Below, piece after piece: positions 6,472-61,348 of a stretch of DNA of 64,000 bases. The notes under the pieces were generated by a model, which saw only the letters and a list, made by a program, of their open reading frames with translations, was not told where the DNA came from and searched no databases. Each line of letters starts with the position of its first letter. Position 1 is the first letter of the stretch. The position numbers and the translations under genes were made by a program. The DNA is from Epithemia pelagica (taxonomy: Eukaryota > Protista > Bacillariophyta), in NCBI GenBank assembly GCA_946965045.2, contig OX337233.1:186001-250000 (forward strand), in the 5' to 3' direction.

Positions 6472-7698
6472 CTAGTAGGCTTCATCCATCCCTTCATCAC
6501 CACGGTGAGTATTGGACCTTGCGCGTTTAAGAGTTGATGTCGATGTAAAGAAGGGTGAGATATCTTCATCTCGGATACCGGCATTTTCAAGAGAATGATA
6601 CCATCCGTTCGATTGGTGCTCACATAGTCGACGAAAACACCACGAATTCCTATCCATTAGTGGCAATGTCGCACAGGAAGTAGTGCGCCATCCACCAATC
6701 ACGGCAACTTGATTGGCAACAGTCACCATACTGCAGCCCCAATGATCTTCTTGCAGTCCAGGGAGATTCCACACGCGCTTGCAGTGCGTATCCAAGACTT
6801 CCACGGTTCGATTGGGTCGTCCCACTACCACCAGACACGATCCCACGGCAACCACTGCACAAGGGCTTCGTGCATTGGAAAGCCTCAACTCTGAATGAGT
6901 GGTCCAGGTGGGTGAGAAAGAAATCAACGTCGAGTCAGTTTCCTTTTCTGTCTCATCACTGTCACAGGGTGTTGTGTCGTCCAAATACTCCACCGAGTCA
7001 AGATTGCCGTACCCGTTTCGGCCTCCAACGACAAAGATGCGGTGACCAACGACTGCGCTGCCAAAAAATGATCGAGGAATATTCATGCTTGGTCCCGCAG
7101 TGACAGTGTGGTTCCTTGTATCAATAATGTCCACCGACGACAAATAACCATCGTTGTAGCCACCGTTGTAGCCACCCATTACAACAATATATCGGTTGTG
7201 CACCGCAACCGCACAACATCCTCTTCGTTGCGTTGATAAGCGACATGTCAATGTCGTCTATTGGATCTCGTGTGTGCTGCTGGTTGTTAAAGATAATTGA
7301 AGTATATCCTTGGCATCGATTCGTTCCATGCAATCCAAAGATCCTATATTGAATCCTCCAATCACGTAGATGCCGCCATTGCACACAACAGCGGCATGTC
7401 CTTCACGACTCTTGTTCATGGGCGGACCCTCTCGCCATTGCATGTCTGGGTCTGCCAGATTTAATAACAGAACGGAATCGAGACTGCCTGGATCTACTTG
7501 ATATCCGCCCAACACGACGACCGTTTGTCTCTTGCTGTTGCTATCTTTGTCAGTATCGAGATGATTTAGTACGACGGATGCATGATACTCTCGCGCTCCT
7601 CCCACAAGAGGAGGCCAGTCATTTTGATTCCATTCAGCTGTCTCGTTCTTCAGGACAAGGCCCGACTGCCATGCTTGTTCTTTTAATGTCACGGACAT
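6472..7698 (-). pseudogene. Kelch-repeat gene K1 with in-frame nonsense codon
   Basis: Track ORFs 7258-7794 and 6472-7251 are in the same frame. TAG at 7258-7260 corresponds to TGG (Trp) in the duplicate K8. Family start MSVTLKEQAW is at 7698. Confidence 0.88.
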
Positions 7699-7791
7699 GG
7701 TTCTTAACGTTTTGACCGCACAATTTATGTGGAGTGCGTTTGCGGCTGTTGCGAGAGAGAATATAATAGAAGCATCAGGACTCTTAGAATA

Positions 7792-7797
7792 CACGTG
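7792..7797. promoter_or_regulatory. Class B upstream motif (CACGTG G-box/E-box in CACGTGGAAG, followed by TCGCACATAGACTTCATGAC)
   Basis: The same motif lies upstream of K3 (33049), K5 (45591) and K8 (58087), with a variant upstream of K7 (~53220-53340). Function is inferred from position only. Confidence 0.4.
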
Positions 7798-8099
7798 GAA
7801 GCTCTGGAGCCCAAATAGCGTCTGTCGTACGTACGATATCGCACATAGACTTCATGACAGCACCACCATATAAGATGTATCTTTCCGCCAAAAGATGTGC
7901 AAATCCACCCAGATCTGTTCCCAATAACAAAAACAAAACCAAACGATGGACAACATCCACAAGAACAAGGCGTCAAAGCATCCTCATGTCTTTCGTTGAC
8001 TAGCATAAGGAATTTGGGCAAAAAACATTGTTCCATCCGAAAGCCATGTTACATGTTACATCAAAACGACCGACAGCCTTATAGAGCCAAACCAGATGA

Positions 8100-9050
8100 G
8101 GAATGAGGACCCCACTGTCACGACAACAAAAAAAGAAACCAGCCTTCGGAATGAACAAGGCCAATTGTGGACGGGTGCATCTGCGGATGGGTCAGGAATG
8201 TACAGGATTGGAACAAGCCTCGAGTGTGGTCAACAGTCACTCAGCTGTGGTAGAACAACGAGTGGTACAACAACCACCACCAGTCAAGCTTTTCCCTGGC
8301 TTCATCAAGCAACCATGATGACTAGCATGATGACGACGACTGCAGCCCTGCCTCAAGACAATAGCAGCAGGACCTTGAAGACACAACAACAAAGTCTCAA
8401 CCACCCAAACCACAACAACTGGCAACCGGCAACATCCACACCACCACTCTGACACTCGCAAGTGGCACTGGTGCAGATGTCCGATTCTTGGTTGGTGTTG
8501 AATTCCACTCGCTCGGGGACATAGTGGTTGTTGAGGCAGTCCCACACAGAATGTTTCCCAGATGTTTACTTACCCACAACCCTTTTTGCCATTAACGTCC
8601 GAACCATTGACCCCTGTTCCGACCACCACTTTCTCAAGGCAAGAGAACAATCAACCGTAGCCAGAGCAAATGCTCACCGTCATTGAGGCTTGGTTAGATC
8701 AAGGTAGCTCCGAGCATAGCGCGCCTCTGTCTGTCTCCACAGTCACCAGAGTGTCTCCCTGTTATGTGGACACGGAGACGATGCATTCCAAGGATGGAAA
8801 CGGGTGGTGCGAGGGAGTATTACTTGCCACGGAGAAATACCGCAGGGACTGCCAAAGGACTCAACAATACGACAAAAATAGCACTCAACACAGCGCAAAA
8901 CTCTGCATAATCCATGACATTGTTTTCTGGTTTCGGAACAGTCGCGTTCTCCTAGACATGCCGTATAGCATCATTAATGATTTCATTTCTACTATAGGGA
9001 TTCACATCATAATTCCACAGGTAGCAGATAATAAGACAACTGTTTGAGAT
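8100..9050 (+). repeat. Duplicated spacer block (near-identical to ~45800-46735; first part also at ~58300-58590)
   Basis: Identical translated stretches (QLWTGASADGSGMYRIG..., MLTVIEAWLDQGSSEH...) occur at both loci. Confidence 0.85.
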
Positions 9051-9129
9051 CATATTGATTATTTGATAAATATAGTGATGAAGAGGTCCTTTTGAATGAT
9101 ACATTGGTCCACAGATTGGTAATTCAACA

Positions 9130-11767: not shown

Positions 11768-13825
11768 TTACGGGAAAGGGTGTGCAGACCGGAGGATGAC
11801 TGGGCGCCAAGTGTTGAGCCAGTTCCTCAGTTGGATGGACGTAGTAGAGAAGGTAAAATGGATTTCAGGAGAATCGTAGAAAAGGATGGTATCAGAGGGA
11901 TTGACTTGAGGTTTGAGGAGGTAGAGAGCTCGAACTTCGCGTTGAGCTTGAGAATATGCGGCAGCTTCAATCGTTGCAGGATTATCGCCGTGAAGATTCT
12001 GATTGCGTTGGAGCCACAGACGATACGCATGATGCCAGAGAACAGTGATGGTAGAAGACACAAGACGGACACCAGAAAATTTAGGGGAGGAGATGCCTTG
12101 GGAGCGAAGAAACTGATCTTGTAAGCGAGACCATTGAGAAGAGAATCGGCCCATGAAGAGCTGATCGATGCCGATGGTAATTTGCGACAAAAGAGCGCGT
12201 TGATAGACGGAAGGAACAAGGGAGATGGAAGGGGACGTATCTTGAAGCCACGAGCGAAGACATTCGGAGAGAAGTAGGGTGATAGTCGGATCAGCATGAA
12301 GGGAATTCCACAATTTATCCAGATCAGAAAACAAGGGGACAGACCATTGTCGATGTGGACAACGAAGAAAATGTGACCACGTTTCAAGTGTTGTGGGACA
12401 TAACGGACATGAGTCTTGATAAAAGGAAGCGTATCGTGAGCGCAGATGTCCGAGTGGTAGCCAATCGTGAATGTACTTGATAATGAAATGACGGTGTGGG
12501 AAGTTGGCGTTAATGGCTCGTCCATGTGCTACCCAATCAACCGAATTAAAAGTATCGTTAGACCAGTTGAATTTGTTGCATAGGTAGTGAGAAGAACGTT
12601 CAAATGTAGACAATCGACGTAATATCGAGCGGTACTTTGACGTGATCGTGCCGTCTTGGCAATGAAGGATTGCTCTGCTACCAGTAACCAGAGGAGCCAG
12701 CGTAGAGGACACATTAGACGGATAAGTATACGAAGAAGCCAGACCATCAGTGTCAATATTCAGTTGAGATGGCAACGGAAGCGTTGTGTAAGCATGAGCA
12801 TCATCCTGGTGCCCTTTAACATGTTGAATATGAGGCATACGGTCAAAGAGTCGTAGAGATGATGAAATCGACTGTTGTAGATCCCAATCAGCCGACATAG
12901 TGGAATATGGAAATTCCACTAGCCACTCTAACCGTTTGTGAATTGTAGTGATCAAGCTTTCCGAGTCTGTATAAAGCCGTAGGTCACGAGGCAGTGGGAT
13001 CTCAGAGAATGAGCAGAAGTGAACCAAGAATCGGAGTAAAGCTAGGAAACCGTAGCTTTCAGCTCTAAACGAAGAAGTACGGTAACCTGGTGCGGGCCCG
13101 TGAATCATAAACAATCGCTGACCAGAGTCAGTTGCACACGTACACCCGAAAGTGCCTTGAAATTGCACTGCAGATCCGTCGCTGCAAAGAAGCAGAGGAC
13201 AAGATGGTCGCGTCAGATAATCGATCAGTTCCACGTCGGTACACACTAGCGTGTGTAGATCCAATAGTAGTTTCTCCCAGGAGGGCAATCGTCTAACATA
13301 AGCATCAAAAGTGTTCAGTGGAGGAGTCGGTTGAGTTGCGACAACGGAACGCGAAGGAAGAACCATTCTCGCAGGTCCGGTGTTGGCGGTAGCCACTGGG
13401 CAGGCAGTTGAGGGGACATCGCCGCGGATAGTATTAGTTGCAATAAACACTGGACCAGTACAGCGAAATTCCTGCCATTGGTTTGCTGCGACATGAACAA
13501 ACAGAGTGGAACGATCTTGAGAAAGATAGGAGAACCATTGTCGTATTGTTGTAGTACCTCCAAATAACCATCGACACAAAGGAGAGGCAAGTCGACGAGC
13601 AGAGTGCGGAGCCAAGAAGGATTGAAGGAACCGTCGCCATGTGCTCCAGGCCCGAGGTCCAGGACGGGACTGGTATGGCGTCAGATAAGTGCAACTTGAT
13701 TTGTTGTCGATACGGCCGTCGATTGCCGCAAGAGTCAATGTACTACCATCTGGAGTGACAAGATCGCTGAGCATTATAACTTGGAGATACAGACGGCACG
13801 CGTTGATCAATTTGAGCTCGGTCGA
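11768..13825 (-). CDS. LINE ORF2 C-terminal part: RNase H domain and Cys/His motif
   Basis: LLCSDGS...SSFRAESYG...YTDSESL...HVKGHQD...LNIDTD (RNase H) and CPLCPTTLETWSHFLRCPH (zinc knuckle-like). Separated from upstream ORF2 by a frameshift. Confidence 0.85.
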   Translation of the reverse strand, partial: STELKLINACRLYLQVIMLSDLVTPDGSTLTLAAIDGRIDNKSSCTYLTPYQSRPGPRAWSTWRRFLQSFLAPHSARRLASPLCRWLFGGTTTIRQWFSYLSQDRSTLFVHVAANQWQEFRCTGPVFIATNTIRGDVPSTACPVATANTGPARMVLPSRSVVATQPTPPLNTFDAYVRRLPSWEKLLLDLHTLVCTDVELIDYLTRPSCPLLLCSDGSAVQFQGTFGCTCATDSGQRLFMIHGPAPGYRTSSFRAESYGFLALLRFLVHFCSFSEIPLPRDLRLYTDSESLITTIHKRLEWLVEFPYSTMSADWDLQQSISSSLRLFDRMPHIQHVKGHQDDAHAYTTLPLPSQLNIDTDGLASSYTYPSNVSSTLAPLVTGSRAILHCQDGTITSKYRSILRRLSTFERSSHYLCNKFNWSNDTFNSVDWVAHGRAINANFPHRHFIIKYIHDWLPLGHLRSRYASFYQDSCPLCPTTLETWSHFLRCPHRQWSVPLFSDLDKLWNSLHADPTITLLLSECLRSWLQDTSPSISLVPSVYQRALLSQITIGIDQLFMGRFSSQWSRLQDQFLRSQGISSPKFSGVRLVSSTITVLWHHAYRLWLQRNQNLHGDNPATIEAAAYSQAQREVRALYLLKPQVNPSDTILFYDSPEIHFTFSTTSIQLRNWLNTWRPVILRSAHPFP

Positions 13826-13860
13826 AGACGGCACGCGTTGATCAATTTGAGCTCGGTCGA
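13791..13860. repeat. Perfect 35-bp tandem duplication that frameshifts LINE ORF2
   Basis: AGACGGCACGCGTTGATCAATTTGAGCTCGGTCGA occurs twice (13791-13825, 13826-13860). Both ORF2 halves contain SSTELKLINACRL. Confidence 0.95.
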
Positions 13861-16800
13861 TGAGGCAGTAAATTCCAGTGCGCTATCCATTAAGAACACA
13901 TCGTTCTCGCGTTGCAGTTTTGGAACAAAGGTTTCTTCTAATTCCACACGGCAATCAACCTCGGACAAGAATTTACGTAGTTGTGGAACCCATTGCATGG
14001 GGGACAAGTGCGGAAGAGGAGTATGAACATCCTCCAAAATAGGTACGCCTGTTCCAGCAAGAAACTGACCCCAAGACATCATGATCGATGCGAGTTTATA
14101 CGGTACTCCAGTTGACCGAATACATGCGAGAAGAAGATACAGCTGTGCAATCCCTCTCTCGATAGATAATGTGCGTAGACCGAGACCACCATAATCAGAG
14201 GAACCATACACCACAGCGTTGGGCATATTTCTGTTGAATCCATACTTTGGTAAGAATGCGCGTTTGAACTGACGTTGTAAAGCGTTGCAATACCCGGTGG
14301 AAAGTGTCGACGATGGAAATGGGTAGCAAATACTCGGAAGATAAATGGCATGATAGTACGACCATGCTTCCGTACGGGTGAAGGGACTTCTTGCCATAAC
14401 ACGGCTGTGCGCGAGATTCCGTTTTGATAGAGCAGTGAACAGCCCGGTGTTAGTAGCATGGGGCGATTTCTGCACTCCGAGTGTTTTGTGACTCTTAAAC
14501 GAGGATAGTTGCTTCAAAGGGACACTAGGATTCCCGTCCTTGAAAGAGATTGTGATTGTTGGGCCAAAGCTGCCATCTTTTAAAAGGGGTAACCCGTCGA
14601 CAGAGAAAGTGTAGTAAAGAAAATGGTATGAGCACTTGAGAGGGTTCAGAGCTCCTCCAGAGAGATCCAGTAGGTCATTCCAACGTTGGGCATCTGACTG
14701 GGCTTTTGCAAGATAATGTTCTGGACAAGCCGCTTGCGGTAATGTAAAGTCGTTCACACTACCGCTAGTGTCGTCGACGAATCCAATCATATATACCGAA
14801 GTGTGTACCGATCCGTCAGGAGAGACAAACGTTGCTCCATTGGCTTTCGCTTCATATGTTTCGAACAGGATGCTAGAAACAACACACCAAATGCCAGGAG
14901 AATTTCCAGCACCCTGGCCAGAACCGTAGATTGGATATATCGTGCAGTGTTTGTAAGATTGTTCAGATACTCCCAATTGCGTTTTGAGAAAGTATTTTGC
15001 CTCTGCCAAAGTTGTTGCATTGATAAACACGATTGACCGATTTTGCCCGTAGCTGCGAGACGCGAGACTGCCGAAAGAGAGAATAATCCTGTCGTAGCAG
15101 GCTGTTGCGTCGTAGTCGAGGTGTACCAAAGGGCGCTTGCTGGCCCGAGAAATTTCATACTGAAATTCTTCACACAACGTTGGAATCACGGCGTCTCGTC
15201 CTGGAACGCCACCAAACTGGGTAGGATGCAAAACTTGTTGGTTTGTTGCGAGCTGAATCATATGGCGCCACTTTAGAGCCAGGACTAAGTTATAGTCCTG
15301 TTCGTAAAGATGTATGACTCGAAGACGATGGATGCGCAAGTCGTCTGGTTCTTTCAAAATCATGACGTTCACAATGTGTTTCCATCTAGCAAACGAGTAG
15401 CGGTTCTCCAATGCACAATTCAGTAGACCGATGTGCCAATCAATCAAGTCATTCCTTTGTTGTTCTAGAACTTGCCCTTCTTCTGTACTTGGATCGATAT
15501 CGTGTTCAGCAATAAGAGCTTTGCTGTGTCCTAAATGAAAGCCGGATGGCGACGTTGTAGTAGACTCTGGCCAGGAACGCATCTTCCCAATCCAATCTTC
15601 TTTGCTAATTGCACACGGAATGGCATCAATAGCCACTCTCGACTTCATATGGTCCAGTAGGCTTTGTTGCATTTCGTCTAATTCATCTGATTGCCATTCT
15701 CCCTCTAAGATCAATTCCGCTGTGTGCGTTGAGGCACCCCAATCGCACCATTCCGAGAACGGTGGTTTCGTAGGAAAAGTTCCATCCGCTTGGCCAAAGT
15801 GGCGTCTGTTTCGTTGAAGTAGGCGTTCTTCAATCTCTGCTGGCGTATCTATGGTAATCCAGCTTGAGCAGTTGTTGTAATCGGTTGTCGTAGGATCTGC
15901 TGGAACGTCTAGGCGCGTAATCCCTGATTTCTTACTCCCCCGATACTGACGAAGCTTCGCATACATTGCTTTTGTCCTTTCTGCTGCGATTCGATGCTTT
16001 AAAGTTTTTGATTGTTGTTTATCGCCTCGATCTATAGCATCTTGAAGTGCAAGTTGGAGTTCATTTTGACGCCTGAATACAGCCTGTTTCGTCATGCTCT
16101 TAATCTTTTGTTGTGTTAGCCGAAGTTCAGTACGGCATGCAGAAAGTGTTGATGGAAATCCCCCGACATGTCCTTGATTTGTGATGTGTGCAATTCCGTC
16201 ATCGAAAGATCGTTTCAGGCGGGTAGCAGAGATCAATTTCTGTAGTAAGTTCTTGCGTTGTCGAAGTTCAGCTAACTCAGTGACGTAAGGTACGTCGCGA
16301 GGTTTCTTTGCACACTGTTTAGCAGCATGCTCGCCTGCACGCTGGAAGTCTTGATCTAACCGTTCTGCCAACTCAGGATCCCATGATGTTTTTAGACGCT
16401 CCAGTCTTTGTTGAAAGTTGTGATCCCGGCAGTACTTGTGTTTAGCTGAGAGATATACGCGGTTTGAAGCCTTATCCTTGCTTGTGAAATCTCGACTGGA
16501 AATAGGGCCCAATTCTTGTGTTTTATTGCCGAATAGTCGTTCCACATTGAAGTCGATGAAAATGTTTCGGTGATCACCACGAGACCGTTGTCCAAAAGGC
16601 TCGTAACATCCGTCTTCAACAGCTTCAGCTACCCAATCGGATGCTAAAACATAATCAATTCGCTCTCTTCCTCGCACATGTGTTGCAAATTCCGCTGTCC
16701 CGAGGATTTGATACATTACATCGCATAAATCAAGTTCGGTACATAGTTGCGACATCCCTCTGTTCTCATCATTCAGAGGCTCGTTAAAATCTCCCATCAG

Positions 16801-17652
16801 GAGAATGCCAGATTGTCCTGCCTGTTTATCTTTGATGAAGGTAGATAAATCGGTAACAAATGCTTCACGGGGGCTACAATTTCGTCGTGCTTGCCGTAGC
16901 ATTGAAGTTTGTTGTGCGGATGCAGATAAGGACCGGATCTGACCAGTTGTTCCATCGACGATTGTTTGTTTACATACTTGATAGGCGGTAATGATCGTTA
17001 GCGATTTGTGTCCGCGGCACGAGAATGTTTGATAAGCCCAGCGTCCGAGAGGATCTCGACCCTGGGCGGTAACTCTACCAGTTGAGCGTCCTTGTGTCAC
17101 TTGTAATACGCCGCCTGGTTTGTAGTCACGGCATCTTGGTGATGGAATTGCACTGCTGGCAACTGTTAGTCTTGAATGGTCAGTCTGTCTTCTCAATGTC
17201 GTCTCGAGCCGATTTCTCACTCCGTGTTGCATAGTATCTAAATTGATCTCGTATAAGCCCCATGTGTCCACTTGGAGATTCGTCATTTCCAGGCATAATT
17301 CTGCAAACTCTCCTCCATCATGACCGATTTTTAAACCGTTCGGATTACATCCGAATACCCGGAAGATCCCGTCTTCTTTCCTTGGATTCCGAGGCTGTCC
17401 AATGAACCCGTTGGTTGCATAGTTTTCTTGTCCTTCCAATGTTGTTTCTTCTGGTGCTTGATAGTAAAAATTGTCCTCGTGATTTGAATGATAGTTGTTG
17501 ATATTGTTATTGATATGAGAAGGCGATGTACTGATGTTGATGTTGTTGTGGTGGTAAGATGTTGTCTGCGATGATGATTGATAGGAATCTTGCAATTGTG
17601 ATTCTTGTTGATCTACGTAGGAGTTAACTGTGCTATTACGATCGTGACTCAT
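13807..17652 (-). CDS. LINE ORF2 N-terminal part: AP endonuclease and reverse transcriptase
   Basis: APE motifs NPNG, GLYEIN, LMGDFNE, RIDYVL and DHR; RT motifs QFGGVPGR, LDYDATACYDRI, GSGQGAGNSP and GFVDD. The ATG at 17652 overlaps the end of ORF1. Confidence 0.92.
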   Translation of the reverse strand: MSHDRNSTVNSYVDQQESQLQDSYQSSSQTTSYHHNNINISTSPSHINNNINNYHSNHEDNFYYQAPEETTLEGQENYATNGFIGQPRNPRKEDGIFRVFGCNPNGLKIGHDGGEFAELCLEMTNLQVDTWGLYEINLDTMQHGVRNRLETTLRRQTDHSRLTVASSAIPSPRCRDYKPGGVLQVTQGRSTGRVTAQGRDPLGRWAYQTFSCRGHKSLTIITAYQVCKQTIVDGTTGQIRSLSASAQQTSMLRQARRNCSPREAFVTDLSTFIKDKQAGQSGILLMGDFNEPLNDENRGMSQLCTELDLCDVMYQILGTAEFATHVRGRERIDYVLASDWVAEAVEDGCYEPFGQRSRGDHRNIFIDFNVERLFGNKTQELGPISSRDFTSKDKASNRVYLSAKHKYCRDHNFQQRLERLKTSWDPELAERLDQDFQRAGEHAAKQCAKKPRDVPYVTELAELRQRKNLLQKLISATRLKRSFDDGIAHITNQGHVGGFPSTLSACRTELRLTQQKIKSMTKQAVFRRQNELQLALQDAIDRGDKQQSKTLKHRIAAERTKAMYAKLRQYRGSKKSGITRLDVPADPTTTDYNNCSSWITIDTPAEIEERLLQRNRRHFGQADGTFPTKPPFSEWCDWGASTHTAELILEGEWQSDELDEMQQSLLDHMKSRVAIDAIPCAISKEDWIGKMRSWPESTTTSPSGFHLGHSKALIAEHDIDPSTEEGQVLEQQRNDLIDWHIGLLNCALENRYSFARWKHIVNVMILKEPDDLRIHRLRVIHLYEQDYNLVLALKWRHMIQLATNQQVLHPTQFGGVPGRDAVIPTLCEEFQYEISRASKRPLVHLDYDATACYDRIILSFGSLASRSYGQNRSIVFINATTLAEAKYFLKTQLGVSEQSYKHCTIYPIYGSGQGAGNSPGIWCVVSSILFETYEAKANGATFVSPDGSVHTSVYMIGFVDDTSGSVNDFTLPQAACPEHYLAKAQSDAQRWNDLLDLSGGALNPLKCSYHFLYYTFSVDGLPLLKDGSFGPTITISFKDGNPSVPLKQLSSFKSHKTLGVQKSPHATNTGLFTALSKRNLAHSRVMARSPFTRTEAWSYYHAIYLPSICYPFPSSTLSTGYCNALQRQFKRAFLPKYGFNRNMPNAVVYGSSDYGGLGLRTLSIERGIAQLYLLLACIRSTGVPYKLASIMMSWGQFLAGTGVPILEDVHTPLPHLSPMQWVPQLRKFLSEVDCRVELEETFVPKLQRENDVFLMDSALEFTASSTELKLINACRLRPSSN

Positions 17653-19753: not shown

Positions 19754-20559
19754 CCAGAAACCAGAAACAACCACTACACTTTCTGGTGTAGGGTGTGGTA
19801 GTAAAGCTACGTTAAGGGCCAGAAACTATAGGTAAAGCTGTGTCAACGTCACTTTCAATTTCGCCTTCCACGAAATTATAAAACGACAAAAATAAAAGAT
19901 ACCATCAGCACCACAATGTGTCTGTCGCCGTCGTCGCCGTCTTTGGTTTCGGAGATTGACCTTTTCGCGCCTTCTGGCCGCGTTTTCTGCTGTGACTTGC
20001 TGTCATGTCTCTCCTGTGGAGGAAGACTCCAAAGAAGACTCTAGCAAGATGAACATCCTCAACGACAACTTTCATCGCAACAAGCTAGAAATCGTACCTT
20101 GGCTTTCGATTCACAACAGGAGGTCTAGTGCAGCAAAGAACAGAACAACAAAAAGAAGAGCACTAGGGCGATGGTATGCTTCCTCATCCACATATCTTTT
20201 ATGGAACGAGAATCAACAGCAAGACCAGGCCAATCTCTTTGTGTTGGGGCACCGCATGGCAGTCTGGTCGCCAATTTTCGAGGACCCTTTCTCGACACGA
20301 CACCATGAGGACCTGCTGGATCGATCACAAAGTCGCCCCATTGGAGGTAGTTGCGCCGGTGACGAGAAGCGCAGTACTATGGATTGAAGTATGGAACGCA
20401 ATTTAACTCCCTCCTGATGCGTCCGATTGGAGTAGTGAAGAACTGATCATGGGAAAGGGTCGCATCGCCCCTTCAAGTCTAATACATACGAAGATTCAAG
20501 CTGGGTGTCGGTGTGGAACGACAAGGCAGCAACGCTAACCAGAATCCAACGAAGAAGAA

Positions 20560-21050: not shown

Positions 21051-21163
21051 GTCATGAAGAAAACAATACAACTACGATTTGAGAACGAAATGATAATGCT
21101 TTAGTTCTGCCAATGTCAGGACATACATGCAATACGTAGCAGATTTCAAGTTTCATTCTCTCC

Positions 21164-22348: not shown

Positions 22349-22958
22349 GGTTTCACACAATGACTGCAGAATTTACGGGGATCGAGACACTGTCTTGTAA
22401 GGCACGTATGTTTGCTCTGCTCCTTTCATTATGATGGGTGTGGACTGGAAGCACGACGACTGACTTGACGAAATGGATGGGTTACGAGACAAATCGTGAC
22501 CGTAGCAACGCGATGAAGAAGACCACGCATCCTTCTTGGGAGTATCGTGGGCATTTTTGGATACCCCGAAAAAGATCTCTCGGAATCGTCGAAAGGAAAG
22601 GAAACAACGACGTGAACTACAACCTGGACGACCCAAACACCATCCAAGCCAACGGAGGGAGTCCACGACGTATCTGAGTGCCCGCGTCCGATGGTCACGC
22701 CTAGGGGGCGAAACGCGGACCCGCCATGGGCTTTTTTGGCTGCAAACCGAACTCCCATGGTCCACCCACGACCGAAATGCCGATCCGGCGCAACCGCACC
22801 CCCGCCAATCGGGACAAACCACATGAATCGCATGGCGAACCAACCTATGACCATGCAAAACGCTCCATGGTCTGCGGAAATCCAAACCAAACGACCACAA
22901 CGGCATCCTGGTCCACCATGGTGCCCAAAAGGCCCAAAAGGCCCAAAGAGAAACCCCG

Positions 22959-31330: not shown

Positions 31331-31587
31331 AGCCATATAATCTTCCACAGCATGATAACTTGACCCATTCAACAGCAGAGAGGCATGGTACCATGAACAT
31401 CTACCCGAGGCCTGGCTCCACTCCTGTTTGCGGTTTGCCGGATGGTGTAACTTTCATTTTCTACTAGTACAACGGTGTACATGATATCTCTATAGTTCGC
31501 AATGCCATAAAGAAAACAATCCAACTACTGTTTGAGTGCTATATAGTTCCGCTAATGTTAGGACATACATGCAGTACGTTGCAAATT

Positions 31588-40064: not shown

Positions 40065-40086
40065 CAAAGCAACCGATGCCCTGGAA

Positions 40087-51970: not shown

Positions 51971-53158
51971 TCAAGTTCCATCCTTCCCTTCATCACCACG
52001 GCGTGTATTGGGCCTTGCGCGTTTATGAGCTGATGTCGAGGTGGAGAAGGGTGAAATATCAGCATGTTGGATATTCCTTCCTTCCCCAAAAAGAAACCAT
52101 CTGTTGGGCTGCTGCTCACAGAGTCGTTGAAAACACCACGTATGCTTGTCCAGTAGTGGTAATGTCGCACAGGTAGGACTGCCAAAACCACTTATCACGG
52201 CAACTTGATTGGCAACAGTCACCATACTGAAGTCATCGCGGCGATTTCCGCATGGTAGGAGATTCCACACACGGTTGCGGTTCGTATCCAATACTTCCAT
52301 ACTAACATTGCCTCGTCCTCCCGCCACAACCAGACAGGATCCCACGGCAACCACTGCACAAGAAGTTCGTGGGTTGGAGAGCACCATTTCAGAGTGAGTG
52401 TTCCAAGCGGACGAGAAGGAAATGACTGTAGACAAAGTGTCGTCTTTTCTCTCCTGCGTAAATTCCAAATACTCCACCGAGTCAAGATGGCCATTGTCGT
52501 TATGACCTCCAACGACAAAGATGCGGTGGCCAATCACCGCACTGCCACAAAGTTGTCGTGGAACAGTCATGGATGGTCCCGCAGTGACAGTGTGGTTGTT
52601 TGTATCTATAATATCCACCGACGACAAATAACGATCGTTGTAATAGCCACCCATTACAACGATGTATCGGTTGTGAACCGCAGCAGCACAACATCCATGT
52701 CGTTCCTTTGACAACCGACATGTCAATGTCGTCCAATGACTGTCCTGCGTGGTGATGGTTGTCAAAGATGATTGCAGAAAATAATTGGCATCAATTCGTT
52801 CAATACAAGCCAAAAGTCCTCGACTGTATCCTCCCATCACGTACACGCCGCCATTGCAAACAACAGCGGCATGTCCATAACATCTCTTGTTCATGGGCGG
52901 CCCTTCTCGCCAGTGCCTGTCTGGGTCTGACAGATTCAATGCAAGAATGGAGTTGACATAGCCTTGGCCTTGTTTGAATCCTCCCAACACGACGACGGTT
53001 TGCTCCTCGTTGTTATCGGTAGGATTCAGTACGACGGAAGCATGATAGTAACGCCATCCACCCTCAAGAGGAGGCCAGTCCTCGAAATTCCATTCAGGTG
53101 TCTCTTCCAAAAGTACAAGGCCCGACTGCCATGCTTGGTCTTTCAGTGTCGTTGTCAT
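51971..53158 (-). CDS. Kelch-repeat protein K7 (395 aa, intact)
   Basis: Uninterrupted Kelch ORF from MTTTLKDQAW. The longer 502-aa track ORF includes non-homologous upstream sequence. Confidence 0.92.
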   Translation of the reverse strand: MTTTLKDQAWQSGLVLLEETPEWNFEDWPPLEGGWRYYHASVVLNPTDNNEEQTVVVLGGFKQGQGYVNSILALNLSDPDRHWREGPPMNKRCYGHAAVVCNGGVYVMGGYSRGLLACIERIDANYFLQSSLTTITTQDSHWTTLTCRLSKERHGCCAAAVHNRYIVVMGGYYNDRYLSSVDIIDTNNHTVTAGPSMTVPRQLCGSAVIGHRIFVVGGHNDNGHLDSVEYLEFTQERKDDTLSTVISFSSAWNTHSEMVLSNPRTSCAVVAVGSCLVVAGGRGNVSMEVLDTNRNRVWNLLPCGNRRDDFSMVTVANQVAVISGFGSPTCATLPLLDKHTWCFQRLCEQQPNRWFLFGEGRNIQHADISPFSTSTSAHKRARPNTRRGDEGKDGT

Positions 53159-54805: not shown

Positions 54806-54902
54806 TCCCAGCGGGAGTGAGTCATGAGGATTAGTGAATGAGTCGTTTGAACAGCAAAAGCACGGCCCACATGCGACCCGACTGTTCATCCCCGCTGGGG
54901 GA
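54806..54902. mobile_element. ~100-bp MITE-like element with CCCAGCGGG / CCCGCTGGG inverted ends
   Basis: Inverted repeats at 54807-54815 and 54891-54899. The same unit is split by the RecQ element in copy A (1431-4591). Related ends occur at ~32930 (TCCCCAGCGGGGG) and ~62667 (CCCCCGCTGGGGG). No clear TSD. Confidence 0.5.
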
Positions 54903-55539
54903 AATCCATAATAGATGGACGAAGCGAGATGACGGCGATGAGGAGGACGGCGACGACGACTTGACCTCTCATCGAGCAATTTCACCAACATGTCTCTTCC
55001 GGAGACGATGATAGATAACGAAAACCATGAAGTCGCCTCCTTCAATCCGTGACAATTGAATTGCGGGGCCCAGGATGAGCATGAGAGTTTGCATGAACCG
55101 GCAAGTTCGAATGCGAATCTCTCCGATCTACTGTGAGCAAAGATCCGCAAAAAGATGCGACAACTCTCGATGGGGAGTCATTCTTGTCATCAATGACCCA
55201 CCATGGTGGCTGCTCCGTGCCGTTGCCGTTCTGAATTCTGGAGCCGTGGCACTGGCAATGGGCAACTCAATTTGGGCTCGTAACCTGGCAAACCGTGTGG
55301 ATCTTTGTCCTTGGCTCGTCCTCTGTTGAATCGTCTTGAAACAACTCTGGAGGGGAGTTTGGTTTTGCAGACGATTCATCGACTGTTCGGAATGGCACTT
55401 GGACGGCTGGACAACCAAGGTTTGTCCTCCCGTTGGTACCAGTGCAAGGGATCTCGGTGGAACATCGTACCATGGCACCATCTCCGATTTCCATTATTGC
55501 TGGCATGTGAAATAGACAAGTAATATACAACAACCTTGA

Positions 55540-55953
55540 CCAAGACCAAATGCCTGGTGGCTATCGGGTTCGATTGCGCAAGTTCAAGGAGGTCCCTATT
55601 GGCACTTGGCTGTCATTGCCAATGTCTATAACGATGGACGGTATCTGCTCGATTGGAAACCAGAATTCAACGAACATGAAGTGGAGAGGGTGAGTCGTTT
55701 TGATCCCCCTTCTGTGATTGGCGAAACTATTCGGTACGAGTGATGGATGAAGCAATCACATGGGTGTATAAAGATTGTCCTGTACGGTTGACTTAGTCCG
55801 ACACATGGCAAATGGCGATGCCTCTTTTACAGTCGAGGCAAATGGTTGTATACGACAGAGTTTGAGGACGGTGAGATTTGGGACAAGATTGAATTTGGTG
55901 ATATTCAGCACGCTGTCAGAGAAAAGAACGAGGCGCGTCCTCTACAGTCATAG
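55540..55953 (+). pseudogene. Second copy of the decayed Tudor/Agenet-like gene
   Basis: Duplicate of 5232-5645 at offset 50308, with the same disruptions. Confidence 0.33.
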
Positions 55954-56198
55954 TGATTGTAGTTTGTTACTGTTGGATTCCAGCCAAAAAAAGCGAATTC
56001 TGCAAAACCATCTCTTGAATCTGATCGGTAGAGGCTGGCAAAGCAATTCACACAGCGATAAAAACGGTCAACAAAAAGCAACGCTGTATTACATGAGTGA
56101 TTATTCTATAGTTTCGCCATTGTAGGGAATACATGCAACATGTTGTACATTTCAGGCTTATCCTTCCCTTGTTCATTGCGATGCGTATTGGTCGTGCT

Positions 56199-56530
56199 TC
56201 ATTTAGATTTTTTGACGTTGACGTGGTACTGCTCACACAGTCGTCGAAAACACAACGAATTCTTTTCTATAAGTGGTACTGTCGCGCAGGTAGGATTCTT
56301 GTACCCACCAATGGCGGTAATTTGATCCGCAAGAGTCACTAGAATGCAGCGTTCAAGACGATTTCCAAAGGGTGGGAGATTCCACACGCGGGTGCGGTGC
56401 GTATCCAAGGTTTCCACAGTTGAATTGCGTCGTCGTCCCGCCACGACCAGCCAGGATCCCACAACAATCATAGCACAAGAACATCGTGGATAGGAAAGAA
56501 CCAAATCAGAATAAGTGATCCATGGATGAT
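56199..56530 (-). pseudogene. Kelch gene C-terminal fragment (duplicate of 5890-6225)
   Basis: Near-identical translation PWITYSDLVLSYPRCSCAMIVVGSW...CFRRLCEQ. Confidence 0.8.
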
Positions 56531-56780
56531 GACTCTGTGTCCTGCAAAGTGCCATGATGCCACCACAAAGTCCCAGATTCTTGTCTCACGACCGCACGAC
56601 CACGGCAGTGGCTCTTCCACATGTAGAGACAAAAATGTGGTCTTCCTTCCCCGCCTTTGACAACAAACCAGCACATTCTATCTTGCAACATAATCTTTCA
56701 ACTTTTGAGTAAACCACTTACTAGGTTCTAGGATTACAATCGAACATAGAAAACAAGTCAGTGACTTGAGAACAAAACGT

Positions 56781-57993
56781 CTAGTAGGCTTCATCCATCC
56801 CTTCATCACCACGGTGAGTATTGGACCTTGCGCGTTTAAGGGTTGATGTCGATGTAAAGAAGGGTGAGATATCTTCATCTCGGATACCGGCATTTTCAAG
56901 AGAATGATACCATCCGTTCGATTGGTGCTCACATAGTCGACGAAAGCACCATGTATTCTTGTCGATTAGTGGCAATGTCGCACAGGAAGTAGTGCGCCAT
57001 CCACCAATCACGGCAACTTGATTGGCAACAGTCACCATACTGCAGCCCCAACGATCTTCTTGCAGTCCAGGGAGATTCCACACGCGCTTGTAGTGCGTAT
57101 CCAAGACTTCCACGGTTCGACTGGGTCGTCCCACTACCACCAGACACGATCCCACGGCAACCACTGCACAAGGGCTTCGTGCATTGGAAAGCCTCAACTC
57201 TAAATGAGTGGTCCAGGTGGGTGAGAAAGAAATCAACGTCGAGTCAGTTTCCTTTTCTGTCTCATCACTGTCACAGGGTGTTGTGTCGTCCAAATACTCC
57301 ACCGAGTCAAGATTGCCGTACCCGTTTCGGCCTCCAACGACAAAGATGCGGTGACCAACGACTGCGCTGCCAAAAAATGATCGAGGAATATTCATGCTTG
57401 GTCCCGCAGTGACGGTGTGGTTCCTGGTATCAATAACATCCACCGACGACAAATAGCGAACGTTGAAGCCACCTATTACAACAATATATCGGTTGTGCAC
57501 CGCAACCGCACAACATCCTCTTCGTTGCGTTGATAAGCGACATGTCAATGTCGTCCATTGGATCTCGTGTGTGCTGCTGGTTGTTAAAGATAATTGAAGT
57601 ATATCCTTGGCATCGATTCGTTCCATGCAATCCAAAGATCCTATATTGAATCCTCCAATCACGTAGATGCCGCCATTGCACACAACAGCGGCATGTCCTT
57701 CACGACTCTTGTTCATGGGCGGACCCTCTCGCCATTGCATGTCTGGGTCTGCCAGATTTAATAACAGAACGGAATCGAGACTGCCTGGATCTGCTTGATA
57801 TCCGCCCAACACGACGACCGTTTGTCTCTTGCTGTTGCTATCTTTGTCAGTATCGGGATGATTTAGTACGACGGATGTTTGATACTCTCGCGCTCCTCCC
57901 ACAAGAGGCGGCCAGTTTTTCATCCCATTCAGGTGTCTCGTCCAAAAGGACAAGGCCCGACTGCCATGCTTGTTCTTTTAATGTCACGGACAT
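56781..57993 (-). pseudogene. Kelch-repeat gene K8 with N-terminal frameshift
   Basis: MSVTLKEQAW...EWDEK (ATG 57993) and WPPLVGGAREY... are in different frames. The shift is at the T5 run 57916-57920, so a homopolymer sequencing error cannot be excluded. Confidence 0.8.
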
Positions 57994-60148
57994 GGTTCTT
58001 AACGTTTTGACCGCAGAATTTATGTGGAGTGCGTTTGCGGCTGTTGCGAGAGAGAATATAATAGAAGCATCAGGATTCTTAGAATACACGTGGAAGCTCT
58101 GGAGCCCAAATAGCGTCTGTCGTACGTACGATATCGCACATTGAACAAACGATGGACAACATCCGAAAGAACAAGGCGTCAAAGCATCCTCATGTCTTTC
58201 GTTGACTAGCATAAGGAATTTGGGCAAAAGACATTGTTCCATCCGAAAGCCATGTTACATGTTACATCAAAACGACCGACAGCCTTTTATAGAGCCAAAC
58301 CAGATGAGGACCCCACTGTCACGACAACAAAAAAAGAAACCAGCCTTCGGAATGAACAAGGCCAATTGTGGACGGGTGCATCTGCGGATGGGTCAGGAAT
58401 GTACAGGATTGGAACAAGCCTCGAGTGTGGTCAACAGTCACTCAGCTGTGGTAGAACAACGAGTGGTACAACAACCACCACCAGTCAAGCTTTTCCCTGG
58501 CTTCATCAAGCAACCATGATGACTAGCATGATGACGACGACTGCAGCCCTGCCTCAAGACAATAGCAGCAGGACCTTGAAGAGACAATGACAAAGTCTCA
58601 ACGTCCCACATTGTGGCACGATTGAATGCCACTCAAGACCTTGCGACAGTTGGGAATTGGGATGCTACGCCGCTTGGCCAATATCTCACATTGCGTAGTC
58701 GAATTGGTCAGGTTCCACCGCGCGGTTTGGTGTTCTGACGGACAATCATCACTTGACCTTTGAGTTTGCCGTGTTCCAGGTAAAACGTCTCGCTGACCTG
58801 ACGTCCGATTTGGCCGTGGTGCACATGTCCGATTCTTGGTGGGTGTTGAATTCCACATACTGGTTGTTCAGGCAGTCTCACACCACAAGGTTTCCCAGAC
58901 TTTTACTTACCCACAACCCTTTTTGCCATTGACGTCCGAACCATCGAGCCCTGTTCCGACCACATTCTCCTCAAGGCAAGAAAACAATCAACCGTTGCCA
59001 CAGCAAACGCTCACCGTCATGGATACTTGGTTCGATCAGGTATAGCTCCGGGCATGTACACGAATTTCGCCATTCCGACTGCGACGAGCAAAACCATTCG
59101 ACCACAACCGCCTCGGGCGACTCGTGTTCCAACACCAACAACCATTCATACGGTGTGGGTGGCAAGGCTTCCATAATGGCCAAGACATGATCGGCGGCAT
59201 TCGTTGTCGTGGTTGTGTTGTTGGTGCTGCTGCTGAGTTCGGTACGAGGCACAAAGGATGTAGTGATCAAGGTCCAACACTGCTGTTCGACAGCGTTGTT
59301 GTCGTGCAACAAGGTTTCGGTGGAACTGGCATTGAGGGGCAAGACATCGCGATGGGGAGCGGCATGTTTCCAGGCATGAGCAATTGAACGAGCAATGCTG
59401 CGACAGAAAGTAGTGGTGGGGGGAGGTGTCCTGTCTGTCTCGTCGCAACGTCGAGACTCGATTCCTTGTTGTCGTTCTGGTCCATTGCGACAATTGGGAC
59501 GACCCTCGATCTGATTTGGTGGGTTCCTCTTGGACTCGTCATCTTCATTGGGCCATTCCGGCTTGACATCACATGACAAGTGCAGCAACGTATTGCGATT
59601 CACATGCAACAGCAACTAGAAGAAGGCATTGCGATTGGAGCGGTGACTCCTCCGAAAGGGACAACCTGCTCTTGACCAAAATGTCGGAATTGGATATGAG
59701 ATGGTCCTCCCTCCTTACTTCCATCCAAAGTCGACCCATTGTCATCTTTCGAGGAAGAACCATTCGAAGCGGACAACATCAGGTCCAACAAGGTTTCGCC
59801 TTGGTGTGCTTCTGTTCCTGCTCCTCTCATTGGTTGTTCCACAGCTACCATTCCATGGACCACGCTGTGTTATGTAGAGTGCCATGATGCCACCAAGAAG
59901 TACCCGATTCTAGTCTCACGACTACACAGCCACGGTGGTGGCACTGTCCCACAACTGACAGGAAACAGGTAATGGCCGAAGCGCAGTACCACTTTTAGAG
60001 ATATAAAAGTGGGATCGATCCTTCCATAACAAACAAGCACCTTCTTTCTTGCAACATGTTCTTTCTACTTTTGAGTAAACACTTAATACTAGGTTCTAGT
60101 ATTGCAATCGAATGTAGAAAACAAGTCAACCACCAGAGAAATAAACGG

Positions 60149-61348
60149 CTAGGCTTCATCCGCCCCTTCATCACCACTTTGAGTATTCGACCTTGCGCAT
60201 TGACGTGCTGATGCCAATGTCAAGATATCAGCATCTCGGATACCTATACCTTCAAGAGAATGATACCATCCGTTCGATTGTTGCTCACAGAGTCGACGAA
60301 AACACCACGTATTCTTGTCCAGTAGTGGTAATGTTGCACAGGTAGGATTGCGCCATCCACCAATCACGGCAATTTGATTGGCAGCGGTCCCCATAGTACA
60401 ACCATTGTGGTAGTTAGTGAATGGTCGGAGATTCCACACACGGTTGCGGCGCGTATCCAACACTTCCACAGATGATTCGAATCCTCCCGTCACAACCAGA
60501 CAGGATCCCATCGCAACCATTGCACAAGATCTTCGTGCATTGGAAAGCCTCAACTCCGAATGATTGGTCCAGGTGGGTGAGAAAGAAATGAACGTCAAGC
60601 CAGTTTCCTTTTTTGTCTCAACACTGTCACAGGGTGTTGTGTCGTCCAAATACTCCACCGAGTCAAGATTGCCATGCTCATTACGGCCTCCAACGACAAA
60701 GATACGGTGCCCAATGACCGCACTGGAACAGCATGCTCGTGGAAGATTCATGGATGGTCCAGCAGCGACAATGTGATTGTTGGTATCAATAATATCCACT
60801 GACGACAAATAGCAATCGTTGTAATAGCCACCCATTACAACGATGTATCGGTTGTGAACCGCAACAGCACAACATCCTGATCGTCTCGTTGATAAGCGAC
60901 ATGTCAATGTTGTCCAATGGCTCTTCTTCGAGCTGCTTGATGTCGAAGATGGTTGGAGCAAATCGGTGGCATTAATTTGTTCGATACAATCCAAACTTGA
61001 ATATCTATTAGTGTATCCTCCCATCACGTAGACCCCTCTATTGCACACAACAGCAGCATGTTTATAACGACTCTTGTTCATGGATGGCCCTTCTCGCCAG
61101 TTCTTGTCCGGCGTTGCTAAATTGAGTACAAGAACTGAATCGAGCTCGCCTTGACCTGCTCGGTATCCACCCAACACGACGACGGTTTGTCTGTTGTTGT
61201 CCGCACCGAGATGATTTAGCACGACCGATGTATGATACTCTCGCAATCCACCCTCAAGCGGAGGCAAGTCCTCGAAATTCCACTCGGGTGTCTTGTCGGA
61301 AAGGACAAGGCCTGACAGCCATGCTCGTTCTTTCAGTGTTGTGGTCAT
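60149..61348 (-). CDS. Kelch-repeat protein K9 (399 aa, intact)
   Basis: Uninterrupted Kelch ORF from MTTTLKERAW. Confidence 0.92.
   Translation of the reverse strand: MTTTLKERAWLSGLVLSDKTPEWNFEDLPPLEGGLREYHTSVVLNHLGADNNRQTVVVLGGYRAGQGELDSVLVLNLATPDKNWREGPSMNKSRYKHAAVVCNRGVYVMGGYTNRYSSLDCIEQINATDLLQPSSTSSSSKKSHWTTLTCRLSTRRSGCCAVAVHNRYIVVMGGYYNDCYLSSVDIIDTNNHIVAAGPSMNLPRACCSSAVIGHRIFVVGGRNEHGNLDSVEYLDDTTPCDSVETKKETGLTFISFSPTWTNHSELRLSNARRSCAMVAMGSCLVVTGGFESSVEVLDTRRNRVWNLRPFTNYHNGCTMGTAANQIAVIGGWRNPTCATLPLLDKNTWCFRRLCEQQSNGWYHSLEGIGIRDADILTLASARQCARSNTQSGDEGADEA

Follow-up and report, generated by a model that had tools for sequence, protein, structure and literature searches.

The window analyzed here, a stretch of 64,000 nt of diatom DNA, carries nine tandem minus-strand paralogs of a stand-alone six-blade Kelch propeller of about 394 amino acids, as seen in the translated ORFs, and most of the differences among these copies fall at some two dozen positions of the face with which Kelch propellers bind ligands. 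It is probable, in our judgment, that the subtelomeric family to which they belong, with its diversified ligand face, serves as an intracellular binding repertoire. Positions are given within the window, and residues are numbered according to K2, the reference copy.

Positions 6472-61348, bounded by the K1 stop codon and the K9 ATG, take in the nine copies, K1 to K9. K2 (21164-22348, ATG at 22348) encodes an intact 394-aa solo Kelch protein, and K4 (34735-35937), K5 (44263-45465), K7 (51971-53158), and K9 (60149-61348, ATG at 61348) are also intact. K1 (6472-7794) is interrupted by a premature TAG at about 7255-7257, where K2 has Trp142, and K6 (46812-48026) by a premature TAA in the codon that aligns with K2 position 145. 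K3 (31588-32810) is split into two ORFs in the assembly and becomes a single uninterrupted ORF once 7 bases are added behind position 32384, as found in the contigs of three read sets. The sequence-only reading, made before this analysis from the letters and ORFs of the window, had listed one copy too few. The ninth, K8 (56781-57953), is a duplicate of K1, with 98% identity across 3.3 kb; its propeller is intact, and its conserved N-terminal 25 codons lie in another frame (57847-58242). The duplicated K1/K8 block also contains a truncated Kelch remnant on the minus strand, consisting of blades 5-6 and the tail (118 aa), which is found downstream of K1 (5890-6246) and in a second copy downstream of K8 (56199-56555). 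Retroelements are interspersed in the arrays, for example an RVT_1 ORF at 25852-29889. An LRR-TIR gene at 40087-41739 also lies inside the array, and its link to the Kelch genes is one of position only.

The fold assignment was supported by sequence profiles and by structure prediction. Six copies matched Pfam Kelch_1 (PF01344, clan CL0186) with E-values of 1e-27 to 1e-32 and 3-4 separately scored repeats, and the Kelch motif (a tandem repeat of about 50 residues in which GG follows four hydrophobic residues, with conserved Tyr, Trp, and Arg) could be seen in all six blades. The AlphaFold model has six blades, within the range of five to seven four-stranded blades that make up closed Kelch propellers, with pLDDT above 85 in blades 1-4 and lower values in blades 5-6. 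Foldseek matched it to six-blade Kelch domains, including KLHL12, KLHL20, Keap1, and designed proteins, with target-normalised TM scores of 0.72-0.80. Sequence matches in the PDB had E-values of 1e-11 to 1e-36, the best five being designed proteins, and the ESM Atlas returned generic Kelch clusters only. The propeller is preceded by a conserved 22-residue N-terminus, and some 55 residues of conserved tail follow it at the C-terminus. By inspection only, the N-terminus is hydrophilic, and neither a signal peptide nor a membrane segment is apparent in the proteins. Most copies have a basic K-R-x-R-P cluster in the tail that looks like a nuclear import signal, and the proteins may therefore be nuclear. 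Pfam found no BTB, BACK, or F-box domain in full-length copies, nor in the N-terminal 40 residues or the upstream in-frame extensions at E-values up to 10. A scan of the 60-residue tail against a Pfam set that holds no BC-box profile gave nothing relevant, and by eye the tail, with its invariant Trp346, Cys347, and Leu351, does not fit the consensus [STP]-L-x3-C-x3-hydrophobic of the BC box, which together with a Cul2 box follows the Kelch domain in CRL2 substrate receptors of the KLHDC2/3/10 type.

Searches of the diatom's own 60.5-Mb genome place the size of the family at no fewer than about 170 loci. This number is the union of several searches, in each of which only 101-121 candidates were scored out of some 900-950 first-look ones; virtually all of those scored matched the family. 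The same genome has at least 11 silicon transporter genes, as expected of a diatom. On at least seven chromosomes (C6, C9, C10, C11, C13, C17, and C18), the Kelch arrays lie within the terminal 20-390 kb, and near-identical copies are present on C6 and C13, where the adjoining partial gene differs by one residue. ORF maintenance was estimated from an unbiased sample of 39 copies, made up of L001-L030 and the nine window copies; loci L032-L071 had been picked for lacking internal stops and were left out. Apart from the K3 frameshift, only K1 and K6 in this sample have a stop inside the propeller. Most other stops are a single recurrent TGA at tail codon 381. The idea that about one quarter of the copies are pseudogenes was rejected, since most of the internal stops are this recurrent TGA, which marks a short-tail subfamily. 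The locus is not contained in any run recorded as RNA. A small run of undefined kind (X4) covers the Kelch ORFs and omits the 470-bp spacer at 32913-33383, which is at most a hint of transcription because contigs cannot show it.

The loops on which the sequence-only reading was based are all present in the minus-strand ORFs. In the first blade, these are YQVDPGSL (K1), YRTGYGEV (K2 and K4), IQQRRGYV (K3), RQQGKFVT (K5), WQQGQNDV (K6), FKQGQGYV (K7), and YRAGQGEL (K9). The second-blade loops, which vary in length from 6 to 11 residues, are FNIGSL, RNTATL, RTGGYRDGANL, YNGRLYL, YMMRGYNRAYL, YSRGLL, and YTNRYSSL. The neighboring strands (QWREGP.MN, HAAVVCNGG, HNRYIVV.GG, and GHRIFVVGG) barely change, as had been described, and are near-invariant. 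Across 62 intact paralogs, column entropy is highest exactly at the loops that follow the GG motif and at the residues next to a conserved Arg, which places the variability beyond chance, and each blade has peaks at GG+1 to GG+6 and at Arg-1, Arg+1, and Arg+2. In the topology of the AlphaFold model, the loops that follow GG correspond to the B-C loops. It is these and the D-A loops that make up the top face, on which Kelch propellers bind their substrates (PMC10087726), so the structural premise of the earlier reading holds. Its restriction of the variation to the post-GG loops does not, since the 1-3 residues flanking the conserved Arg in the D-A loops, which it missed, vary as much. The top face thus comprises twelve short segments, namely six B-C loops and six D-A tips around the conserved Arg.

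The copies are mosaics. A PHI-type recombination test gave z = -34.7, site compatibility falls off within about 100 nt, trees built from different segments are almost wholly discordant (RF 90-106 of 118), and the block-wise best matches of a copy sit on other chromosomes. These patterns in the alignment indicate that gene conversion among the copies is pervasive. Within the window, K4 is 98.7% identical to K2 in codons 51-100, compared to 76-84% elsewhere, and 94-96% identical to K7 in codons 301-394. The conversion tract over codons 51-100 accounts for the loops that K2 and K4 have in common. Since the segment trees are discordant and the PHI-type test shows recombination, whole-gene trees were not used as primary evidence for selection.

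Averaged over regions, the frame is clearly constrained. Among the six window copies aligned as intact (K2, K4, K5, K7, K8, and K9), dN/dS was 2.33 in the loops quoted above and 0.16 in the quoted frame strings. Family-wide, the frame has a dN/dS of 0.29; over all the comparisons made it lies at 0.16-0.4, at a dS of about 0.33, and 104 sites were found to be under purifying selection in a FUBAR-like run on a forest of sequence pairs. An omega above 1 in the loops is borne out at the level of sites and among the window copies, where whole-loop values are 1.3-2.3, but not by family-wide whole-loop averages, which are 0.95 for the B-C loops and 0.84 for the D-A loops. For the 48 positions defined by their offset from the motifs, dN/dS was 1.07-1.10, compared to 0.38-0.44 for the remainder, 1.21 (p 0.006) with parsimony counts on block trees, and 1.44 among the window copies.

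Site models, which the earlier reading had proposed as a check, were fitted with our own implementations rather than with codeml or HyPhy. M2a was favored over M1a on four segment trees (LRT 106-141, omega2 2.9-6.6) and in a tree-free forest of disjoint nearest pairs (LRT 187, omega2 3.9). With double and triple hits allowed, the LRT in the forest was 130. The models assign an omega of about 3-6 to 9-25 sites, and FUBAR-like runs with site-specific synonymous rates called 28 sites when trees were used and 9 when the forest was used. When the called sites were mapped onto the structure, 23/25, 13/13, and 8/9 of them lay in top-face loops, either B-C or D-A (Fisher p 2e-11 to 4e-4); sites 113-115 adjoin indel columns. 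Both the site models and the face mapping thus support the earlier claim of selection for variation, with the specificity of binding as its presumed object.

The most serious alternative, which we nevertheless regard as unlikely, is that unconstrained top-face loops simply drift with an omega of about 1, while purifying selection preserves the fold and frequent short-tract conversion moves diverged cassettes between copies, which codon models misread as bursts of amino acid change. The family-wide loop averages and the pervasive recombination are what it would lead one to expect. With single-nucleotide changes only, the omega of the 48 top positions is 1.11 and not significant (p 0.21). Multi-nucleotide changes make up 41% of all changes at the top positions and 13.5% elsewhere, suggesting that loop-cassette import by conversion inflates part of the signal. 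In offset-pooled tests with local synonymous counts on the pair forest, no offset was significant, the best being R+2 (1.66, p 0.08) and GG+3 (1.48, p 0.14). However, the tree-free LRT of 130 was obtained under global multi-hit rates, and null simulations, which included patchy, conversion-like divergence, gave LRTs of only 0, 25, and 4.7, with an omega2 of about 1.0-1.3; the value of 25 was an optimiser artefact with omega2 = 1. Among nearest pairs, nonsynonymous differences at R+1 (pN 0.256) are about 2.1-fold more frequent than synonymous differences propeller-wide (pS 0.121), and when only single-nucleotide changes are counted, GG+3 keeps an omega of 2.9 (p 0.008). Residue use is also far from neutral. 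Each selected site holds 7-13 different residues, with Trp at 3.8 times, Tyr at 2 times, and Arg at 1.6 times the neutral expectation and Leu, Ile, Val, and Met at 0.1-0.3 times, a 4-10 fold depletion of aliphatics that argues against simple relaxation. An average omega of about 1 in spite of such filtering of residues implies that the allowed changes were accepted faster than neutral ones.

Two observations could be taken to suggest instead that a local mutational process acts on the loops with no selection involved, whether targeted hypermutation, multi-nucleotide mutation, or templated micro-conversion: the excess of multi-nucleotide codon changes at the top positions and the synonymous counts at R+1, GG+1, GG+2, and GG+4, which, with multi-step paths counted, are 1.3-2.3 times the background. 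At these top codons, synonymous changes of a single nucleotide are not raised, being 0.66 of the background, which also counts against drifting loops. The hypervariable codons lie one codon from the conserved Arg and GG, which have an omega of 0.1-0.3, so a hot spot would need single-codon precision twelve times per gene, and no repeat or motif able to template such a process was seen. We therefore consider a purely mutational origin very improbable. Least credible of all is that the genes are decaying repeat cargo of subtelomeric duplications with no present function, for although the arrays are mixed with retroelements, stops, the K8 frameshift, and two truncated remnants occur in the window, and RNA runs do not hold the locus, the frame shows purifying selection at many sites, propeller stops are confined to two copies of the unbiased sample, and contigs built from reads lack the K3 frameshift.

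Next, the family was compared to known systems. BTB-Kelch adaptors such as Keap1, KLHL12, and KLHL20 have the same fold and motif, with six blades, the hhhhGG signature, and the conserved Arg, Trp, and Tyr. In Keap1, long D-A and B-C loops build the substrate pocket on the top face (PMC10087726). The hypervariable positions of the diatom family sit in exactly these loops. The adaptors carry BTB and BACK domains and are single conserved orthologs, whereas the diatom proteins are solo 394-aa propellers with conserved terminal extensions of their own, encoded in a single genome by no fewer than about 170 genes. The variable offsets GG+1, GG+3, Arg+1, and Arg+2 may match the residues of Keap1 that contact Nrf2.

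Rapidly evolving ubiquitin-ligase adapters, such as nematode MATH-BTB and F-box proteins and plant F-box-Kelch proteins, likewise show lineage-specific birth-and-death expansion on a conserved scaffold, and their positively selected sites also concentrate on the substrate-binding surface. The combination typical of the nematode adapters, a large expansion with surface-clustered sites of omega above 1, is seen in the diatom family as well, subject to the nonsignificant offset-pooled and single-nucleotide tests. Foreign proteins that evolve quickly have been proposed as the targets of such adapter families, a proposal cited in PMC4091423 and PMC8120010. The diatom family differs from them in that its solo propellers show no ligase-docking domain, its host is a diatom, and its genes lie in subtelomeric arrays with intense short-tract conversion.

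Plasmodium var and trypanosome VSG genes are also located at chromosome ends in hundreds of copies, with ectopic exchange, mosaics, and birth-and-death turnover, and the diatom Kelch genes share with these contingency families the chromosome-end location and the ectopic recombination that makes mosaics. The var and VSG products, however, are secreted or surface antigens by which parasites evade host immunity, while in the diatom proteins, by inspection, neither a signal peptide nor a membrane segment is apparent and most carry the nuclear-import-like motif. They look more like receptors than antigens. In lamprey VLRs and the LRR domains of plant NLRs, an invariant repeat frame likewise bears exposed hypervariable positions at fixed offsets in each repeat, and diversity is built by copying segments between gene copies. 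The Kelch beta-propeller, in contrast, is not an LRR solenoid and has no signalling domain, its diversification is germline rather than somatic as far as is visible, and any immune role is hypothetical. In our literature searches, we found no account of such a diatom family or of subtelomeric hypervariable Kelch genes.

The window belongs to a subtelomeric array of solo Kelch genes, whose family is very large and whose members are mostly intact. Purifying selection holds the propeller strands and bottom loops, and we propose that diversifying selection drives about 10-25 positions on the top face. The loop segments are reshuffled by short-tract conversion among paralogs, both within one chromosome end and from one end to another. 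The outcome would be a repertoire of intracellular binding proteins that share one scaffold and each have a different ligand pocket, with the conserved termini presumably supplying one common output. The variable face probably binds ligands, and the output may run through an effector, for example a ubiquitin ligase. The targets may be fast-evolving, e.g., proteins of viruses, transposons, or parasites, or cues that tell self from non-self. More tentatively, the family could be a germline-encoded, combinatorially diversified repertoire of intracellular Kelch receptors by which diatoms recognise viruses, transposon proteins, or parasites, a possibility that we hold with considerable doubt.

If this is true, an innate-immune-like system would have been built on a scaffold for which no such role was known before. 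Viruses, parasites, and mobile elements control bloom dynamics, yet little is known of the ways in which diatoms recognise them, and hundreds of intact genes with selected diversity confined to the ligand face are a concrete, testable candidate for a recognition repertoire. The family would add Kelch to the folds recruited for hypervariable binding, such as immunoglobulin and LRR, and would parallel in nature the Kelch and propeller binders that have been engineered. The arrays also offer a clean system in which subtelomeric conversion and selection may jointly maintain diversity in a free-living eukaryote.

Nine Kelch paralogs, K1 to K9, are present in the window, every one on the minus strand. 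Five are intact: K2 (21164-22348; 394 aa, the reference for residue and codon numbering), K4 (34735-35937), K5 (44263-45465), K7 (51971-53158) and K9 (60149-61348). K8 (56781-57953) has an intact propeller with its N-terminal 25 codons out of frame. K1 (6472-7794) carries a TAG at the codon of Trp142 (about 7255-7257), K6 (46812-48026) carries a TAA at codon 145 (near 47556), and the assembled K3 (31588-32810) appears frameshifted. In contigs from three read sets, 7 extra bases (TGGTTGT, plus strand) follow 32384 at full depth, and with them K3 is a single open frame of 424 codons; the frameshift reflects an assembly indel or else a polymorphism. These two stops and the 7-base indel all fall within codons 138-145, where the Ser/Thr-rich C-D loop of blade 2 ends, and the other 69 sampled copies are all uninterrupted at this place. 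The true start is the conserved Met of M-T-T-T-L-K-E-Q-A-W-Q-S-G-L-V-L and, therefore, the proteins have about 394 residues and are intronless. Upstream of this Met, K4 (35938-36129) and K9 (61349-61543) share a minus-strand stretch that is conserved and open in frame (V-H-P-F-R-Q-V-S-R-A-S-S-P-H-P-S ... S-K-P-T-C-L-L-Q-D-S-V-S-I). It had no Pfam match; a conserved 5' leader is one possibility, a longer, alternative N-terminus another. One small sequencing run from 2024 covered the K3 and K4 open reading frames within 31500-36200; its depth was zero in the spacer at 32913-33383 and low up to 34011, and three other runs covered this spacer. The run may be RNA, as seen through contigs, which cannot prove transcription.

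Two truncated Kelch remnants lie downstream of K1 (5890-6246) and K8 (56199-56555). Blocks around K1 (4555-7846) and K8 (54863-58141) share 98% identity over 3.3 kb, remnant included, and a second pair (8061-9069 and 45765-46769) is 97% identical over 1 kb; both pairs are recent segmental duplications within the array. Between the Kelch genes are two large plus-strand ORFs, 22959-25982 and 25852-29889, the latter with a reverse-transcriptase domain (RVT_1). Composition on the plus strand of 22000-30000 is very skewed (GC skew -0.23 to -0.31, AT skew +0.22 to +0.41), leaving the coding strand rich in A and C. The two ORFs are a retroelement. Large minus-strand ORFs at 11768-19774 gave no Pfam matches. 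An LRR gene (LRR_6; 38775-40064) and an LRR-TIR gene (TIR_2, E 1e-6; 40087-41739) sit mid-array on the plus strand.

The fold is an ordinary Kelch propeller. In six copies, Kelch_1 (E 1e-27 to 1e-32) was the only domain type that Pfam detected. AlphaFold, run with a 72-sequence alignment, predicted six four-stranded blades with a mean pLDDT of 71.7; values exceeded 85 throughout blades 1-4 and were low for residues 1-22, the two long C-D loops and the tail (341-394). Foldseek matched the model to the six-blade Kelch domains of KLHL12, KLHL20 and Keap1 and to the designed SAKe6 proteins (target-normalised TM 0.72-0.80). BTB and F-box domains were tested for and not found; since these are the defining domains, the family is not one of BTB-Kelch or F-box-Kelch adaptors. 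The N-terminal 22 residues and the C-terminal tail are conserved, with Trp346, Cys347 and Leu351 invariant and K384, R385 and R387 kept in at least 90% of copies. No known domain was detected in either terminus, and a shared role of both in localisation or docking is probable.

Column entropy across 62 intact paralogs is strongly periodic. One set of peaks falls in the six B-C loops, which follow the GG doublets (61-68, 111-116, 172-177, 218-223, 286-290 and 330-335). The other falls in every D-A loop, at the 1-3 residues (37, 38, 92, 94, 152, 154, 201, 202, 269, 309, 311 and 313) beside a conserved Arg (R36, R93, R153, R200, R268 and R312). Strand topology places both loop types on the same face. 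In Keap1, long D-A and B-C loops form the top-face substrate pocket, and the A-B and C-D loops lie on the bottom (PMC10087726). The bottom-face C-D loops at 124-141 and 234-256 are long, moderately variable, low in complexity and modelled with low confidence. The sequence-only reading had quoted hypervariable loops and near-constant strands; every quoted string was found in the window, confirming that observation. Its placing of the variability after the GG motifs was right, but it had missed the second variable set flanking the D-A Arg.

Nei-Gojobori dN/dS, calculated by region over all pairs, was 0.29 in strands, 0.28 in A-B loops, 0.42 in C-D loops, 0.37 in the N-terminus, 0.60 in the tail, 0.84 in D-A loops and 0.95 in B-C loops. 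As synonymous divergence is about 0.33-0.5, the low values in the frame mean that purifying selection, and not homogenisation alone, keeps it. A set of 48 top positions was defined by motif offset alone (GG+1 to +5; Arg-1, +1 and +2). Their dN/dS was 1.07-1.10 across divergence classes, compared to 0.38-0.44 in the rest of the propeller, and 1.44 in the six window copies aligned as intact (K2, K4, K5, K7, K8 and K9). In these six, the two loops singled out by the sequence-only reading reached 2.33, compared to 0.16 for its frame strings.

Whole-gene tree methods are unsafe for this family. Trees of four gene segments were nearly fully discordant (Robinson-Foulds 90-106, maximum 118), a PHI-type incompatibility test gave z = -34.7 (1000 permutations), and the genes are mosaics. 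Site compatibility is lost within about 100 nt, and the closest match of a 50-codon block is often on another chromosome. Identity between K2 and K4 is 98.7% in codons 51-100, which explains the loops they share, and 76-84% elsewhere; between K4 and K7 it is 94-96% in codons 301-394. Full-length genes at two chromosome ends (L022, C6:326.7-330.9 kb; L023, C13:3.130-3.135 Mb) are identical and their adjoining partial genes differ by one residue, suggesting recent inter-chromosomal subtelomeric exchange.

Site models were fitted with our own MG94-type codon code. M2a was preferred over M1a on all four segment-specific trees (LRT 106-141, omega2 2.9-6.6, p2 2.5-12%), and B-C or D-A loops contained 23 of the 25 sites with posterior >0.95. 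With synonymous rates free to differ between sites, a FUBAR-like grid called 28 sites; beta was at least 2.5 in 11, all in these loops. Because gene trees are unreliable under recombination, a tree-free forest was built from disjoint, locally nearest pairs in eight 50-codon blocks (221 pair-blocks), with omega classes shared across pairs. It again preferred M2a (LRT 187, omega2 3.9, p2 4.1%), and all 13 sites called at posterior 0.9 (37, 38, 94, 113, 114, 115, 152, 154, 201, 202, 218, 313 and 331) were on the top face. Adding global double-hit and triple-hit rates lowered the LRT to 130.5 and left the 13 sites unchanged. A FUBAR-like run on the forest called nine sites, eight on the top face and one at the first residue of an A strand. 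Three replicates simulated under M1a gave LRTs of 0.0 (uniform null) and of 4.7 and 25 (conversion-like high-divergence patches); the value of 25 is an optimiser artefact, since omega2 was 1 and p2 was 0. In each analysis the called sites were significantly concentrated on the top face (Fisher p 2e-11 to 5.5e-4), and in top compared to bottom loops (p 7e-6 to 0.02). Sites with omega >1 thus cluster on one face, as selection for varied binding specificity had been proposed to produce.

A purely neutral origin of the top-face diversity gains some ground when local synonymous counts alone are used. Pooled by offset, the forest gave 1.66 at Arg+2 (p 0.08), 1.48 at GG+3 (p 0.14) and 1.29 at Arg+1 (p 0.2). 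Parsimony counts on block trees gave 1.21 for the 48 top positions (p 0.006), 2.0 at GG+3 (p 0.004) and 2.05 at Arg+2 (p 0.002); with single-nucleotide changes only, the 48 positions fell to 1.11 (p 0.21) and GG+3 was 2.9 (p 0.008). Codon changes of two or three bases on one branch made up 41% at top positions compared to 13.5% elsewhere, so part of the model-based signal comes from multi-nucleotide replacements, plausibly imported loop cassettes. Against neutrality, the nonsynonymous rate at Arg+1 in nearest pairs exceeds the synonymous rate of the whole propeller by a factor of about 2.1, and synonymous single-nucleotide changes are not raised at top codons. Residue use at called sites, each of which holds 7-13 different residues, is also far from neutral: Trp (3.8 times expectation), Tyr (2 times), Arg (1.6 times), Gly, Glu, Gln, Asp and His are enriched, and Leu, Ile, Val and Met are at 0.1-0.3 times. 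Such a composition is typical of exposed binding surfaces. Since it also reflects the filtering out of many mutations, tolerated changes must be accepted faster than under neutrality to give an average omega near 1.

The genome (60.5 Mb, 23 contigs), which encodes at least 11 silicon transporters, in keeping with a diatom, was searched with three different paralogs, each search scoring only 101-121 of about 900-950 first-look candidates. Nearly every scored candidate matched, full-length matches at E <1e-100, and their union held at least roughly 170 distinct loci by manual tally. From these partly scored lists, the family probably has several hundred members. Arrays sit terminally on the contigs, in the first 17-390 kb of C6, which includes the window, and in the last 20-270 kb of C9, C10, C11, C13, C17 and C18. 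Single copies occur close to the opposite ends of C6 and C17 and at a few internal sites. Among 834 database relatives from a protein word search, the best 120 are all unnamed ENA predictions with 67-91% identity.

Integrity was judged from 39 copies sampled without bias (the first 30 loci and the nine of the window); 40 further loci, selected for having no internal stop, carry no weight here. The K3 frameshift aside, only K1 and K6 of the 39 have in-propeller stops. Seven of 13 distinct internal-stop sequences (L007, L009, L014, L017, L019, L023 and L025) share a TGA at tail codon 381, which immediately precedes the basic K-R-x-R-P cluster, and remain homologous downstream of this stop. These look like a short-tail subfamily without the nuclear-import-like motif; readthrough of the TGA is an alternative. 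The recurrence of this stop speaks against decay of most apparent pseudogenes.

No description of a Kelch family of this kind emerged from a literature search. The family behaves similarly to substrate-adapter families that evolve adaptively in nematodes and plants, and in its genomic dynamics it is similar to subtelomeric contingency families. An immune-like role may be hypothesized, its support being analogy and the LRR-TIR gene inside the array. We consider it likely that the family is an intracellular binding-protein repertoire, in which one conserved Kelch scaffold would carry varied putative binding faces, diversifying selection would act on roughly 10-25 top-face positions, and short-tract conversion would recombine loop segments.
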